Below the pieces are notes generated by a model. The model was not told the DNA's origin and did not search any database. It saw only the letters and a program-made list of their open reading frames with translations. A program made the position numbers and the translations under genes. Shown piece by piece: positions 1 through 3,482 of a stretch of 64,000 nt of DNA. Source of the DNA: Entomortierella parvispora E1425. Taxonomy: Eukaryota > Fungi > Mortierellomycota. Every line of letters starts with the position of its first letter. The stretch's first letter is position 1. The stretch covers positions 1,612,001-1,676,000 of the forward strand of contig BQFW01000012.1 of NCBI GenBank assembly GCA_020891255.1, given 5' to 3'.

Positions 1-792
1 TTTGTTGTTGCGTTGAAGAATTAAGGCCAAGTACGAAAGGAAGGCATCGGTCTTTGAAGAGGATGATGCGGGTGGACGTGCCATTCCGAAGGGCGTTGAT
101 AGCGAAGGGGTATTGTAGGCACCGAAGCCAAAAAATCCAGGGGTAGAACCCACTGAAGCTGCAGGTGCAGAAGGTGTGTCTGATACTCCATTCAAGGCCG
201 AGGTTATCGCTCCAAATCCGGATGTCGTGGTGGTGGTAGACCAAAGACCAGCACCAGTTGACGGAGCCGTTGATCCAAAGGCGGAACCCGATGGTGCTGT
301 TGATCCAGAAGCAGCGCCAGACCCAAACCCAAAGGACGACGGAGCCGTAGACCCAAAGGTGGCACCGGATCCAAATCCAAAGGATGCGCTTGTGGATGAG
401 GGTCCTGGATAGAAGCCGAATGAAGACGTCGAAGTAGCGGACGCCGTCCCTGCGAACCCTGAAAAGTGTAGAGTCTCTCTCGAATCCACCGCGAGTTCAA
501 TGAGGCCAGTGCACGTTTGGCCCAATTTGGCCACCAGCTCGACTGCATCACGGAACCTCAGGTCTAGTGTCCGGATATGATGCCCACTCCTAATTAACGC
601 GCCCTCCATGACCGCGGAGACGAATCGCTCCAAGGCTTCCTGGGTTTTGATATGGATGCTCGACCAGAGAAAGGGCGAAAAGTAGTCATGCCAAGTAGAG
701 CAGACGCGACTCGCCATGGCAAGATCATGCTTGGAGAGACTGGGGATGATCATGTCATTGATCTCTTGTGGTAGCTGTTGCATGGCGTTCAT
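1..792 (-). CDS. F-box protein with FG-repeat insert, 3' part outside the window (first 264 aa)
   Basis: Hand translation from ATG at 792 is stop-free to base 1: MNAMQQLPQEINDMIIPSLSKHDLAMASRVCSTWHDYFSPFLWSSIHI (F-box pattern LP.EI...I...L...DL....RVC..W), then GHHIRTLDL...CTGLIELAV (LRR-like), a Ser/Gly/Thr-rich stretch with 11 FG dipeptides, then FLSYLALILQRNNK. Missing from the ORF track because it has no stop inside the window. Confidence 0.85.
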   Translation of the reverse strand, partial: MNAMQQLPQEINDMIIPSLSKHDLAMASRVCSTWHDYFSPFLWSSIHIKTQEALERFVSAVMEGALIRSGHHIRTLDLRFRDAVELVAKLGQTCTGLIELAVDSRETLHFSGFAGTASATSTSSFGFYPGPSSTSASFGFGSGATFGSTAPSSFGFGSGAASGSTAPSGSAFGSTAPSTGAGLWSTTTTTSGFGAITSALNGVSDTPSAPAASVGSTPGFFGFGAYNTPSLSTPFGMARPPASSSSKTDAFLSYLALILQRNNK

Positions 793-1184
793 GACCGAGA
801 ACCAATGAGGAATGGACGAATGAATGGATGGATGAATGAATGAATGAATGAACGAAAGAGATGAGAAGAGATGAAGAGCCAGGGTCAGTTTGTCGCTCAA
901 TGGTCTTTTTTTTTTTTTTTTTTTTTTTTTTGAAAGCAATTGTTGTGCTGCGCCCACAAGGAACGCCTGTTGGAGTCTTCTGAAATGGCAAGTTTTTTTA
1001 TTTTTATTTTTTAGAAGGCGAGGGTAGCAATGCAATTGAAGGATCTTGTGTATTATAGGAAAGAAAACGGGCAAAGAGTGGAAAGTGTAGAGAGATAGAA
1101 GGAGGGTATAACGGCAAAAACCGAGGACCGTACAGGAAAAGTCGGGGTATATTATTAGCGGCGTGGTGGGGAGGATGCAGGGCA

Positions 1185-3482
1185 CTATGACATCTGCTCC
1201 TGCTTGATGACATGTCCCCAGGAGAGGTTGGATTCCATGCCCGTGCAGGCATTGGCATTGGTGTTGGTATTGGTATTGGTATTGGTATTGGTATTGGTAT
1301 TGGTATTGGCATTGGCCGAGGCATTGGCAGCGGCGGCAGCAGCGGCAGCGGCAGCAGCGGCCTTGGACCGATCAATCTCCTTCCTCAAAGCAGTCGAGAT
1401 CTTTTTGCCCATGCGGCTCATGACCTCGTCCAAGGGCTTGGCGCGGTAGGCACTAATCTCAAAGTGAACCTCGACACCATTCGCCGTCTTGATCTGGCCA
1501 ATGGTACCCACAGACCGGCAAACAGAGTCCATTGGGGACAAGTTGATGTGGCGCGTCACGGCATCGCGTCTTGACAAGTTGGACTTGCAACCCATGCAGT
1601 TCCAAAGAAGCTTGTCGTGGATCGACTCGATGTGGCGGACCAACACCGCGGGACCAGCAAAGCATTGACCGCAGTTGGGGCACTGGTGCGTGGGCGAGGA
1701 CGAGCTGATCACATTGCCATTGTTGTTGGAGGGTGATGTAGGCGAGAGCATGGACGATTCTCGGAGGGTCGACATCCGCCTCTGCGATCCCAAAGAGGAA
1801 TTGGAGGAGATGGAGGAGGTCGAGGACTTGCGAGAGCGGATGATCAGACTTGAGGACATGGATGGAGAAGTCATGGCCATGTTCTCAGAGTATCCGTGCT
1901 GCTGCTGTTGCTGCTGGCGAAGTTTCCGCTCCGTCAGGTAATTGTCGTAGATGCTGTTGCAGGTCTGACCGAACGATGCCGTGGGAGACGTCGCCCTTGA
2001 AGACTCGGAGGGAGAGTGGGTATGGGGCATCTCGGAAGAGCTGGGTGTGTACGAAGACGAAGGCGAAGCAAATTGTGGCGTCGTCGTTCCAGAAGAGAAG
2101 CTGGACTCGACTGGAGAGGACATGCATCCCCATGAGTAACCCTGCTGATGTTGACCTGATCGCACAATTGTGTTTGCGGCAGACATGGAAGGCGACAAGA
2201 CTCCTTGCGATTGGTGTCCCTGGACCATTTGCTGTTGCTGGTGGTGATGTTGACCCTCCCATTGCACCTCGCCGTTGGGGGCTGAGAATCCACGAGACTG
2301 GTTCAGGCCAAAAGTTGGGGGAGCAAACATGGGCGTTGACAAGGAGTGCTGGTTGTCCGAGACCGATGCAGTGGCAATTTGGAGCTGGGGCTTGCGTTGC
2401 TTGGGTCGCTGGATTTGTCCCTGGCGTGGATGGTAGTGCAAGGGCGACAAGAGCGCTTGTGGTGCAGCTGCACTGCCATTTGACGACTGCTGTTGTTGTT
2501 GCTGTGGTCCCATGGCCATTGTCATATGTGATTGTTGTTGTTGGTGCTGGGAAATGTGGATCTGCTCATAGATTGTGCCCATCAGCTCATTGGATGCATA
2601 AAAGCTGCTGTTGTTGTTGTCAGAGGTGGCAGATGCGGATGATGCCGAACTTTGCACAGACGAAGCGCAAGGAACGTGCCAAGAAGCTGCAGTCGTCATC
2701 GTGGCCATGTTTGTCTGCGTGGCAGGGGATTGATTATTTCCAAGGGAGGACAAAGTCGCGGATGACCCCTGAAAAGCGTGCGTGCCAAAGGTCGTCGTGG
2801 ATGCCACGGGATGACTCAACTGCTGCTGTTGTTGTTGTTGTTGTTGTTGCTGCTGCTGGTGGTGCTGTTGCTGCTGAATATACATTCGCTGTTCGTCCGT
2901 TAGCACGTAGTCCATTCCAAAGGACATGGAAGACACGATTGGCGTTGATCCTGTCACTTCTGACATGATGGAGGAAGATGAAGAAGTATGCTGGTGGTGA
3001 GGATATGCAGATTGAGAGGTGTGATACGCGCCCTGTTCTAAGGGAAACGGTATGGTAGTAGCAGAGGAAGTCATCACGCCCTTATAATCTTCACGTCCAG
3101 CCATAATCCCAATCGACAATTCATCCAGGGACGAGTGCGAGAATCCGGAATCCCTCCTGAAGCTGAGCCAACTGCCAGGCACTGCTCCTTCAGGCATCTC
3201 TTGGCAGGACTCGGTAGGTTCGTAGGAAGAGCATGAGGATGGAGATGCGGGTGAGGAAGTTGGGGCAAAGTTCATACCGAGACCATTCAGGTAGTTTTGT
3301 GCTGCTGGAGAGTTATCAGTGGTGGTTGTTGCGGCGTAATTGCTTGAGATGTCCATCATCACTGGGACTTGGTTGTTTGTGTTGTAGTAGTTCATGGCTT
3401 GTTGCTGTTGTTGTTGCTTGTTAGGAAAGTAGGATGGCTGCGAGGTGGATGGCTGTTGTTGGTATTGAGGATATTGTGACAT
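1185..3482 (-). CDS. C2H2 zinc-finger transcription factor with polyQ and Ser-rich regions (765 aa, intronless)
   Basis: HQCPNCGQCFAGPAVLVRHIESIH is a C2H2 finger. WNCMGCKSNLSRRDAVTRHINLSPMDSVC is a second C2H2/C2HC-like finger. Multiple polyQ tracts; polyA and (NT)n near the C-terminus. Confidence 0.85.
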   Translation of the reverse strand: MSQYPQYQQQPSTSQPSYFPNKQQQQQQAMNYYNTNNQVPVMMDISSNYAATTTTDNSPAAQNYLNGLGMNFAPTSSPASPSSCSSYEPTESCQEMPEGAVPGSWLSFRRDSGFSHSSLDELSIGIMAGREDYKGVMTSSATTIPFPLEQGAYHTSQSAYPHHQHTSSSSSIMSEVTGSTPIVSSMSFGMDYVLTDEQRMYIQQQQHHQQQQQQQQQQQQQLSHPVASTTTFGTHAFQGSSATLSSLGNNQSPATQTNMATMTTAASWHVPCASSVQSSASSASATSDNNNSSFYASNELMGTIYEQIHISQHQQQQSHMTMAMGPQQQQQQSSNGSAAAPQALLSPLHYHPRQGQIQRPKQRKPQLQIATASVSDNQHSLSTPMFAPPTFGLNQSRGFSAPNGEVQWEGQHHHQQQQMVQGHQSQGVLSPSMSAANTIVRSGQHQQGYSWGCMSSPVESSFSSGTTTPQFASPSSSYTPSSSEMPHTHSPSESSRATSPTASFGQTCNSIYDNYLTERKLRQQQQQQHGYSENMAMTSPSMSSSLIIRSRKSSTSSISSNSSLGSQRRMSTLRESSMLSPTSPSNNNGNVISSSSPTHQCPNCGQCFAGPAVLVRHIESIHDKLLWNCMGCKSNLSRRDAVTRHINLSPMDSVCRSVGTIGQIKTANGVEVHFEISAYRAKPLDEVMSRMGKKISTALRKEIDRSKAAAAAAAAAAAANASANANTNTNTNTNTNTNTNTNANACTGMESNLSWGHVIKQEQMS
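1255..1325. repeat. (GGTATT)n hexamer repeat encoding (NT)n in the zinc-finger protein
   Basis: Direct tandem ggtatt/ggcatt units in the sequence. Confidence 0.85.

Follow-up and report, generated by a model that had tools for sequence, protein, structure and literature searches.

An intact gene of Entomortierella parvispora encodes a predicted 657-aa F-box/leucine-rich repeat (LRR) protein that carries a nucleoporin-like phenylalanine-glycine (FG) loop within its LRR domain, and, as judged by comparison with its relatives, this arrangement defines a subfamily in the Mortierellaceae. At the sequence level it is established that the FG pattern is not random, that it is under constraint and that it recurs at a single site of the protein family. 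A full-text literature search returned no description of an F-box protein with FG repeats, and the pairing of an F-box/LRR protein with an FG loop appears to be undescribed.

The window, meaning the whole 64,000-nucleotide stretch of DNA that was analysed, corresponds to G000:C12:1612001-1676000. The first 792 bases contain, on the minus strand, 264 stop-free codons starting from an ATG at position 792. The initial annotation had noticed this open frame as absent from the ORF list, and it is missing there because it crosses the window edge. When the contig was followed leftwards, neither a stop nor a frameshift was found past the edge, and the frame stays open until a stop codon just past G000:C12:1610822, giving a single-exon, intronless gene with an uninterrupted frame of 1,971 bases (Table 1). 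The ESM Atlas has an entry that is letter-for-letter identical to the translated protein; therefore, an independent gene call arrived at the same model. In the 5' region of the gene, (GAAT)n repeats cover window positions 810-856 and an unbroken A26 tract (in the gene orientation) covers 906-931. The upstream neighbour (window 1186-1500, minus strand) has at its 3' end 10.8 copies of the hexanucleotide ATTGGT (1251-1315), which code for alternating Asn-Thr and are preceded by an Ala run at 1326-1361. Its C-terminal peptide, SNLSWGHVIKQEQMS, is also kept at the orthologous locus L016.

Table 1. Coordinates of the F-box/LRR gene with the FG loop and of its parts (window positions unless a contig is named; aa, residues of the predicted protein).
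Feature	Position	Strand	Basis
First 264 codons of the 657-aa gene	1..792	-	Translation of window and flanking DNA
Remaining 393 codons and stop, left of the window	G000:C12:1610822-1612000 (L002:3822-5000)	-	Flanking DNA translated
F-box-like domain, aa 5-48 (LPQEINDMIIPSLSKHDLAMASRVCSTWHDYFSPFLW)	649..780	-	Pfam PF12937, E 2e-8 and 1e-7
First LRR units, aa 49-106 (strands 45-48, 75-80, 99-106)	475..648	-	AlphaFold2 model, pLDDT 90-95
Disordered insert, aa 111-244 (134 residues)	61..462	-	AlphaFold2 pLDDT ~33; flanks >90
FG-repeat run, aa 125-236, 11 FG, median spacing 10 residues	85..420	-	Composition and shuffle test
Internal protein repeats, aa 137-152 and 153-168 (SFGFGSGA.FGSTAPS), with partial unit 169-178	259..384	-	Codon comparison
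LRR scaffold resumes, aa 247-264 (helix AFLSYLALILQRNNK)	1..54	-	Model helix 247-261, pLDDT 94-96
5' intergenic or leader region, from the gene to the upstream neighbour's stop codon	793..1185	-	Sequence, Tandem Repeats Finder

The N-terminal F-box read at first from the translation alone was confirmed by Pfam, with PF12937 matching at 34.3 bits in the 264-aa piece and 31.9 bits in the full protein, both above the curated cut-off of 24.3 bits. On the full protein, Pfam gave this F-box-like domain and a weak LRR match and nothing else. The AlphaFold2 model, built on alignment/profile A1 of 30 family members (pTM 0.73), has the F-box as helices in aa 3-43 (pLDDT 87-91). A single LRR-like unit had been proposed ahead of the insert; the model has three LRR strands there instead, and these first units are kept across the family in alignment A1 (GALIRNGHHIRTLD and C..L.EL). 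Past the insert, the scaffold resumes at LALILQRN as originally described, the motif L..LL.RN..LR.L is conserved in the same alignment, and a regular strand-helix solenoid begins with helix 247-261 and ends near residue 640, with pLDDT >85 over most of it. According to the model, the FG stretch is a loop within the LRR, placed after the third strand, and not a separate terminal domain.

Against PDB sequences, profile A1 matched FBXL2 (E 3.9e-17), FBXL17 (E 3e-13), TIR1 (E 5e-11) and Skp2 (E 2e-10), and the family profile also matches the F-boxes of KDM2B, FBXL5 and Skp2. Similarly, the best Foldseek matches were TIR1, FBXL17, FBXL2 and COI1, with a probability of 1.00. The genome has three matches to Skp1 (PF01466) above the cut-off, on contigs C9, C2 and C6. 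Because of these profile matches, the Foldseek ranking and the Skp1 copies, the protein is classified as an FBXL-class (F-box plus RNI-type LRR) predicted SCF substrate receptor. The structural part of the SCF adaptor identity suggested by the initial annotation is in this way supported by Pfam, by the FBXL profile matches and by Foldseek. Additionally, the C-terminal LRR body (L002:3822-4400, minus strand; aa ~489-520) has a family-wide element, W..C..LE.L...I..VPRP(D/E)...RTNGRP, in which 30 diverse members all share W489 and R507 and nearly all share P506, P508 and D509. This element is probably the specific ligand or substrate site of the family.

In the AlphaFold2 model, the disordered insert protrudes as a loop that joins LRR strand 99-106 to helix 247-261; it is rich in S, G, A, T, F and P and nearly uncharged. 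The count of FG dipeptides given earlier for the run was exact, and the motifs SFGFGSG, TFGSTAP and AFGSTAP are all present in it. When the segment was shuffled, a mean of 2.48 FG was obtained and none of 20,000 shuffles reached the observed number; of the 15 Phe in the shuffled segment, 11 precede Gly.

The two complete repeat units of the loop are identical at 14 of 16 residues, and their DNA has 13 base differences, of which 11 are at third codon positions. Counted by codon, there are 10 synonymous versus 2 non-synonymous differences, where the expected synonymous share of random single-base changes in the repeat sequence is 29%, and the binomial probability of the observed synonymous excess is about 1e-4 (arithmetic from the codon counts). 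The units are nearly saturated at synonymous sites, and no DNA-level repeat array was found by Tandem Repeats Finder in bases 1-792. The third-position pattern indicates that the loop is translated and under protein-level constraint, and the synonymous excess together with the lack of a DNA-level repeat shows that the duplication is old and that purifying selection has held the peptide in this frame. A microsatellite-like expansion was considered and rejected, both for the absence of an array from this region and for the near saturation of the units. Also considered was an unspliced intron or non-coding filler, which is argued against by the third-position pattern, by the identical Atlas gene call and by the existence of annotated homologues with FG inserts.

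For comparison with the loop, the FG nucleoporins of the same genome were located by Pfam profiles and verified by their non-FG domains. The set includes a Nup98-type protein with the autopeptidase domain (E 1e-52), an Nsp1 with Nsp1_C and a RanBP2-type zinc-finger protein, as well as two proteins above the Nucleoporin_FG cut-off; the verified nucleoporins thus compared are of Nup98, Nsp1, zinc-finger and GLFG type, and the ranges given here for them omit one FG-poor zinc-finger segment. The loop has 9.0 FG per 100 aa (7.9-10.4 in the true FG nucleoporins), a median FG spacing of 10 aa (10-12.5), 1.6% charged residues (0-1.7%) and 10.7% Phe (9.4-11.1%), and the fraction of its Phe that sits in FG matches that of the verified nucleoporins. 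The S/T/A/G/P content, at 78%, is just below the nucleoporin range of 80-85%, and the length of about 120 aa is shorter than the 139-389 aa of the nucleoporins. The original description of a nucleoporin-like FG domain holds in this way for FG density, spacing, charge and composition, the last with S/T/A/G/P slightly under the range. By these measures the loop is physically a short, cohesive, low-charge FG domain.

The F-box/LRR protein itself, judged by its domain content, is not a nucleoporin. A pore-anchoring domain (Nsp1_C, Nup98 autopeptidase or coiled coil) was absent in the Pfam and fold searches of the protein. The Pfam profile Nucleoporin_FG (PF13634) had no match to the protein at E <= 10 and none at the locus in the genome scan at E <= 1, and matched the paralogue on contig C9 with an E of 0.11 only. 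The verified Nup98-type protein and Nsp1 are also below the cut-off of this profile (27.8 and 30.9 vs 32.2 bits), so PF13634 is a weak test of membership in this genome.

In blastp comparisons (uncorrected), the loop scored about 2-3 SD above shuffled inserts against nucleoporin FG domains, and therefore the likeness is one of composition and motif, not of homology. No second copy of the insert DNA was found in the genome, where it is unique, and blastn of the insert against six nucleoporin loci gave short codon-word matches only. The recent capture of a nucleoporin exon was rejected on these three results, and the loop is read as having converged on the nucleoporins in its composition and motif pattern. 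When the insert protein by itself was searched against the genome, only the match to itself was returned, and as a low-complexity query it was uninformative; in the protein atlas, the insert by itself had no feature match that could be used, and its structure rows, with TM <0.3, were meaningless. On contig C13 of the same genome there are two near-identical FG-nucleoporin-like stretches about 30 kb apart, L018 (G000:C13:2163431-2166676) and L019 (G000:C13:2132443-2135691), the open frame around one measuring 289 aa and that around the other just 134 aa. They may have arisen by segmental duplication, one copy having decayed since.

The F-box/LRR family has at least 59 matches in this genome, several of which are clustered in tandem, and at E <= 0.001 it comprises 772 cluster representatives; all family members that could be traced to a source are from Mortierellaceae. 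Tandem paralogue clusters are found at G000:C12:2558885-2575913 and G000:C1:2472823-2481750, with several further loci on G000:C5, where several open frames of about 701 aa are nearly identical. The near-identical frames and the tandem clusters point to recent local amplification.

Relatives with an F-box and FG-rich sequence, which the initial annotation had proposed to look for in Mortierellaceae proteomes, were found in Linnemannia, Mortierella and Gryganskiella with the FG run at the same site. FG-dense segments are present in about 10 of the 155 retrieved relatives, and in every FG-dense relative that has both anchors, the run lies between the block of F-box and LRR1-3 and the C-terminal body. 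The paralogue on contig C9, 39% identical to this protein, has 11 FG where 1.72 are expected (0 of 20,000 shuffles), and the Gryganskiella protein P0002 has 4 where 0.54 are expected (p ~5e-4). The enrichment was initially taken as something that orthologues should share, and this was upheld in part: it is present in the syntenic orthologue, in the C9 paralogue and in homologues of three other genera, and it is weak in some relatives, such as P0008, with 3 FG, and the soil metagenome relative L048, with 2 FG.

The tree of the family was made with 98 rows from the C-terminal body (quick LG+G4), and in it all FG-dense rows fall in one starred clade of 55. A six-row subclade with a support of 92 contains this gene, the C9 paralogue, two Gryganskiella proteins, Linnemannia zychae P0103 and Mortierella sp. 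P0078, five of the six being FG-dense; the four-member clade of the gene itself has a support of 100*. Three further FG-dense proteins are outside the six-row subclade, and therefore at least four gains or losses are needed (starred branches). A single origin of all FG inserts was rejected, since this quick tree requires at least four changes. Based on the tree and the insert sequences, FG-type loops are the mark of a subclade with members in four genera, and they also turn up in a small number of other branches. The Gryganskiella proteins P0002 and P0008 (Gryganskiella cystojenkinii BGZ83_007512 and BGZ83_007514) are encoded two gene numbers apart on one 31-kb contig, unlike the two FG copies of this genome, which are on separate contigs (C12 and C9).

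The same site is hypervariable in the family, with 8-25 residues in most paralogues, strongly acidic loops in Linnemannia and Mortierella homologues, and an S/T/A/P-rich loop with few FG and without significant enrichment (p 0.09) in the C6 paralogue. Such variation fits a neutral or flexible spacer at a permissive site, in which the FG pattern would be a by-product of the old duplication of an FG-containing unit, as do the uneven FG density among relatives, the fast divergence of the insert with its many indels, and the fact that part of the FG count comes from the repeated 16-aa units. This reading has to account, however, for the divergence of those units at third positions, which indicates protein-level constraint in the loop, and for the absence of a repeat at the DNA level. 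It also has to account for FG enrichment over composition that recurs in the C9 paralogue and in other genera, in inserts that are not alignable to one another. Furthermore, other paralogues have long disordered inserts without FG, and only 2 of the 36 paralogous frames of this genome are FG-dense (this gene and the C9 copy); therefore, FG is no default by-product of long disordered inserts. Taken with this evidence, a spacer is considered rather unlikely.

Some close relatives of the gene are broken. The syntenic orthologue (L016:300-2800, on a Logan contig from ERR15945747) has the same upstream neighbour and retains FG-rich sequence; its frame is disrupted, with 1 bp missing from the F-box, 32 bp inserted, a stop codon in frame and a deletion of 5 bp. 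Nucleotide identity to this orthologue is 57% in the loop vs 72% in the folded parts, the loop diverging faster and with many indels. A scan of soil metagenomes gave one relative (L048:58-2407, contig Ga0302182_10029470), where the tail of one family member is followed by a second member with two frame shifts and an S/T-rich loop with only two FG. With two relatives having broken frames, the gene is therefore dispensable in at least some relatives, and these broken copies, together with the faster divergence of the loop, show birth-and-death evolution.

In such a family, the gene of E. parvispora could itself be silent or decaying, an intact-looking member in which the FG loop is a relic. The frame disruptions of the orthologue and of the metagenome relative are in agreement with this, as is the GC3 of 0.42 in the insert vs 0.56-0.65 in the rest of the gene. 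However, the whole frame is open and its product is modelled with confidence as an F-box/LRR fold, the repeat units are under purifying selection by the codon comparison, and the sister of this gene in the tree, P0002 in another genus (Gryganskiella), is intact and FG-bearing at 45% identity. A relic is very unlikely in view of these observations.

Here it is proposed that the FG loop would be a selected, multivalent module of weak interactions with the mode of action of FG domains. That the loop acts in this way, binding transport receptors or partitioning into the FG phase or into condensates, is an evenly balanced proposition. In the proposed mechanism, the loop would allow the receptor to bind nuclear transport receptors, to enter the FG phase of pores or of other FG-type condensates, or both, with the conserved LRR body binding the substrate specifically and Skp1 docking on the F-box. 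The outcome could be recruitment of substrates, ubiquitylation aimed at the pore or at transport factors or, alternatively, the receptor-independent passage of this ~70-kDa protein through the pore. The fuller claim, that a Mortierellaceae subfamily of SCF receptors uses its FG domain to enter the pore barrier or condensates, or to capture FG-binding proteins for ubiquitylation, is unlikely; the captured proteins could then be transport receptors, stalled cargo complexes or parasite factors.

Fast-expanding birth-and-death F-box families are linked to non-self recognition in nematodes and plants. By analogy, the loop may be a bait or integrated decoy that captures, for ubiquitylation, the FG-binding factors of viruses, endobacteria or parasites, or the transport receptors of the fungus itself. 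Consistent with a decoy are the large and tandemly clustered family, its traced members all being from Mortierellaceae, the hypervariable site of the insert, the pseudogenised close relatives and the physical mimicry of the FG nucleoporins of the same genome. However, the link between F-box expansion and immunity is drawn from other lineages, and purifying selection inside the loop speaks against an arms race there, which leaves the decoy highly improbable. Should the loop work instead as the FG module proposed above, the protein would represent a naturally evolved means of directing a ubiquitin ligase to the FG phase or to transport receptors.

The barrier of the nuclear pore is made of FG domains, and very few proteins outside the pore are known to carry them. 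A functional loop in an F-box/LRR protein would bear on the surveillance and turnover of pores and of cargo that is stuck in them, and also on how disordered domains target enzymes to condensates. The gene offers a naturally occurring FG module that is compact (~120 residues) and sits on a soluble scaffold able to fold, and the paralogues with acidic, neutral or no loop at the same site are a ready series for comparison. If the loop is only a spacer, it still documents the repeated rise of FG-type sequence at one hypervariable loop of an expanding family.

Among known systems, the FBXL receptors (human FBXL2, FBXL17 and SKP2; plant TIR1 and COI1) have the same N-terminal F-box directly followed by an RNI-type LRR solenoid, with an identity to this protein of ~11-16% in structural alignments. 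The protein described here differs from them in the FG-repeat loop of 134 residues in the LRR and in the family-specific VPRP..RTNGRP element, and none of the solved FBXL2, FBXL17, SKP2, TIR1 and COI1 proteins is known to carry FG repeats. The cohesive low-charge FG domains of Nup98/Nup100/Nup116, of Nup49/Nup57 and of the N-terminal part of Nsp1/Nup62 match the loop in density, spacer length and charge; they are attached to a pore-anchoring domain, whereas the F-box/LRR protein is without one and its loop is shorter.

RanBP2/Nup358 combines FG repeats with E3 (SUMO) ligase activity and is a stable component of the pore with Ran-binding and zinc-finger domains. Like it, the protein of E. parvispora would have FG repeats and a ubiquitin-like-modifier ligase function in one polypeptide, the latter being a prediction here, but as a soluble-type SCF adaptor it lacks the Ran-binding and zinc-finger domains, as seen by Pfam. 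Roadkill/HIB, a substrate adaptor of Cul3, is reported at nuclear pores, where it is found together with nucleoporins and acts on cargo during its transport (PMC3002282). It is likewise a cullin-RING substrate adaptor, using BTB-MATH for Cul3 and not an F-box for Cul1; FG repeats are not ascribed to Roadkill itself in that paper (PMC3002282). In the peroxisomal membrane, the YG domain of PEX13 forms a selective phase that resembles that of the nuclear pore, a precedent for a disordered, FG-like domain of aromatic-Gly type that works outside the nuclear pore (PMC9795577). PEX13 differs in having Tyr-Gly in place of Phe-Gly and in being a conduit-forming membrane protein with no ligase substrate receptor attached to it.
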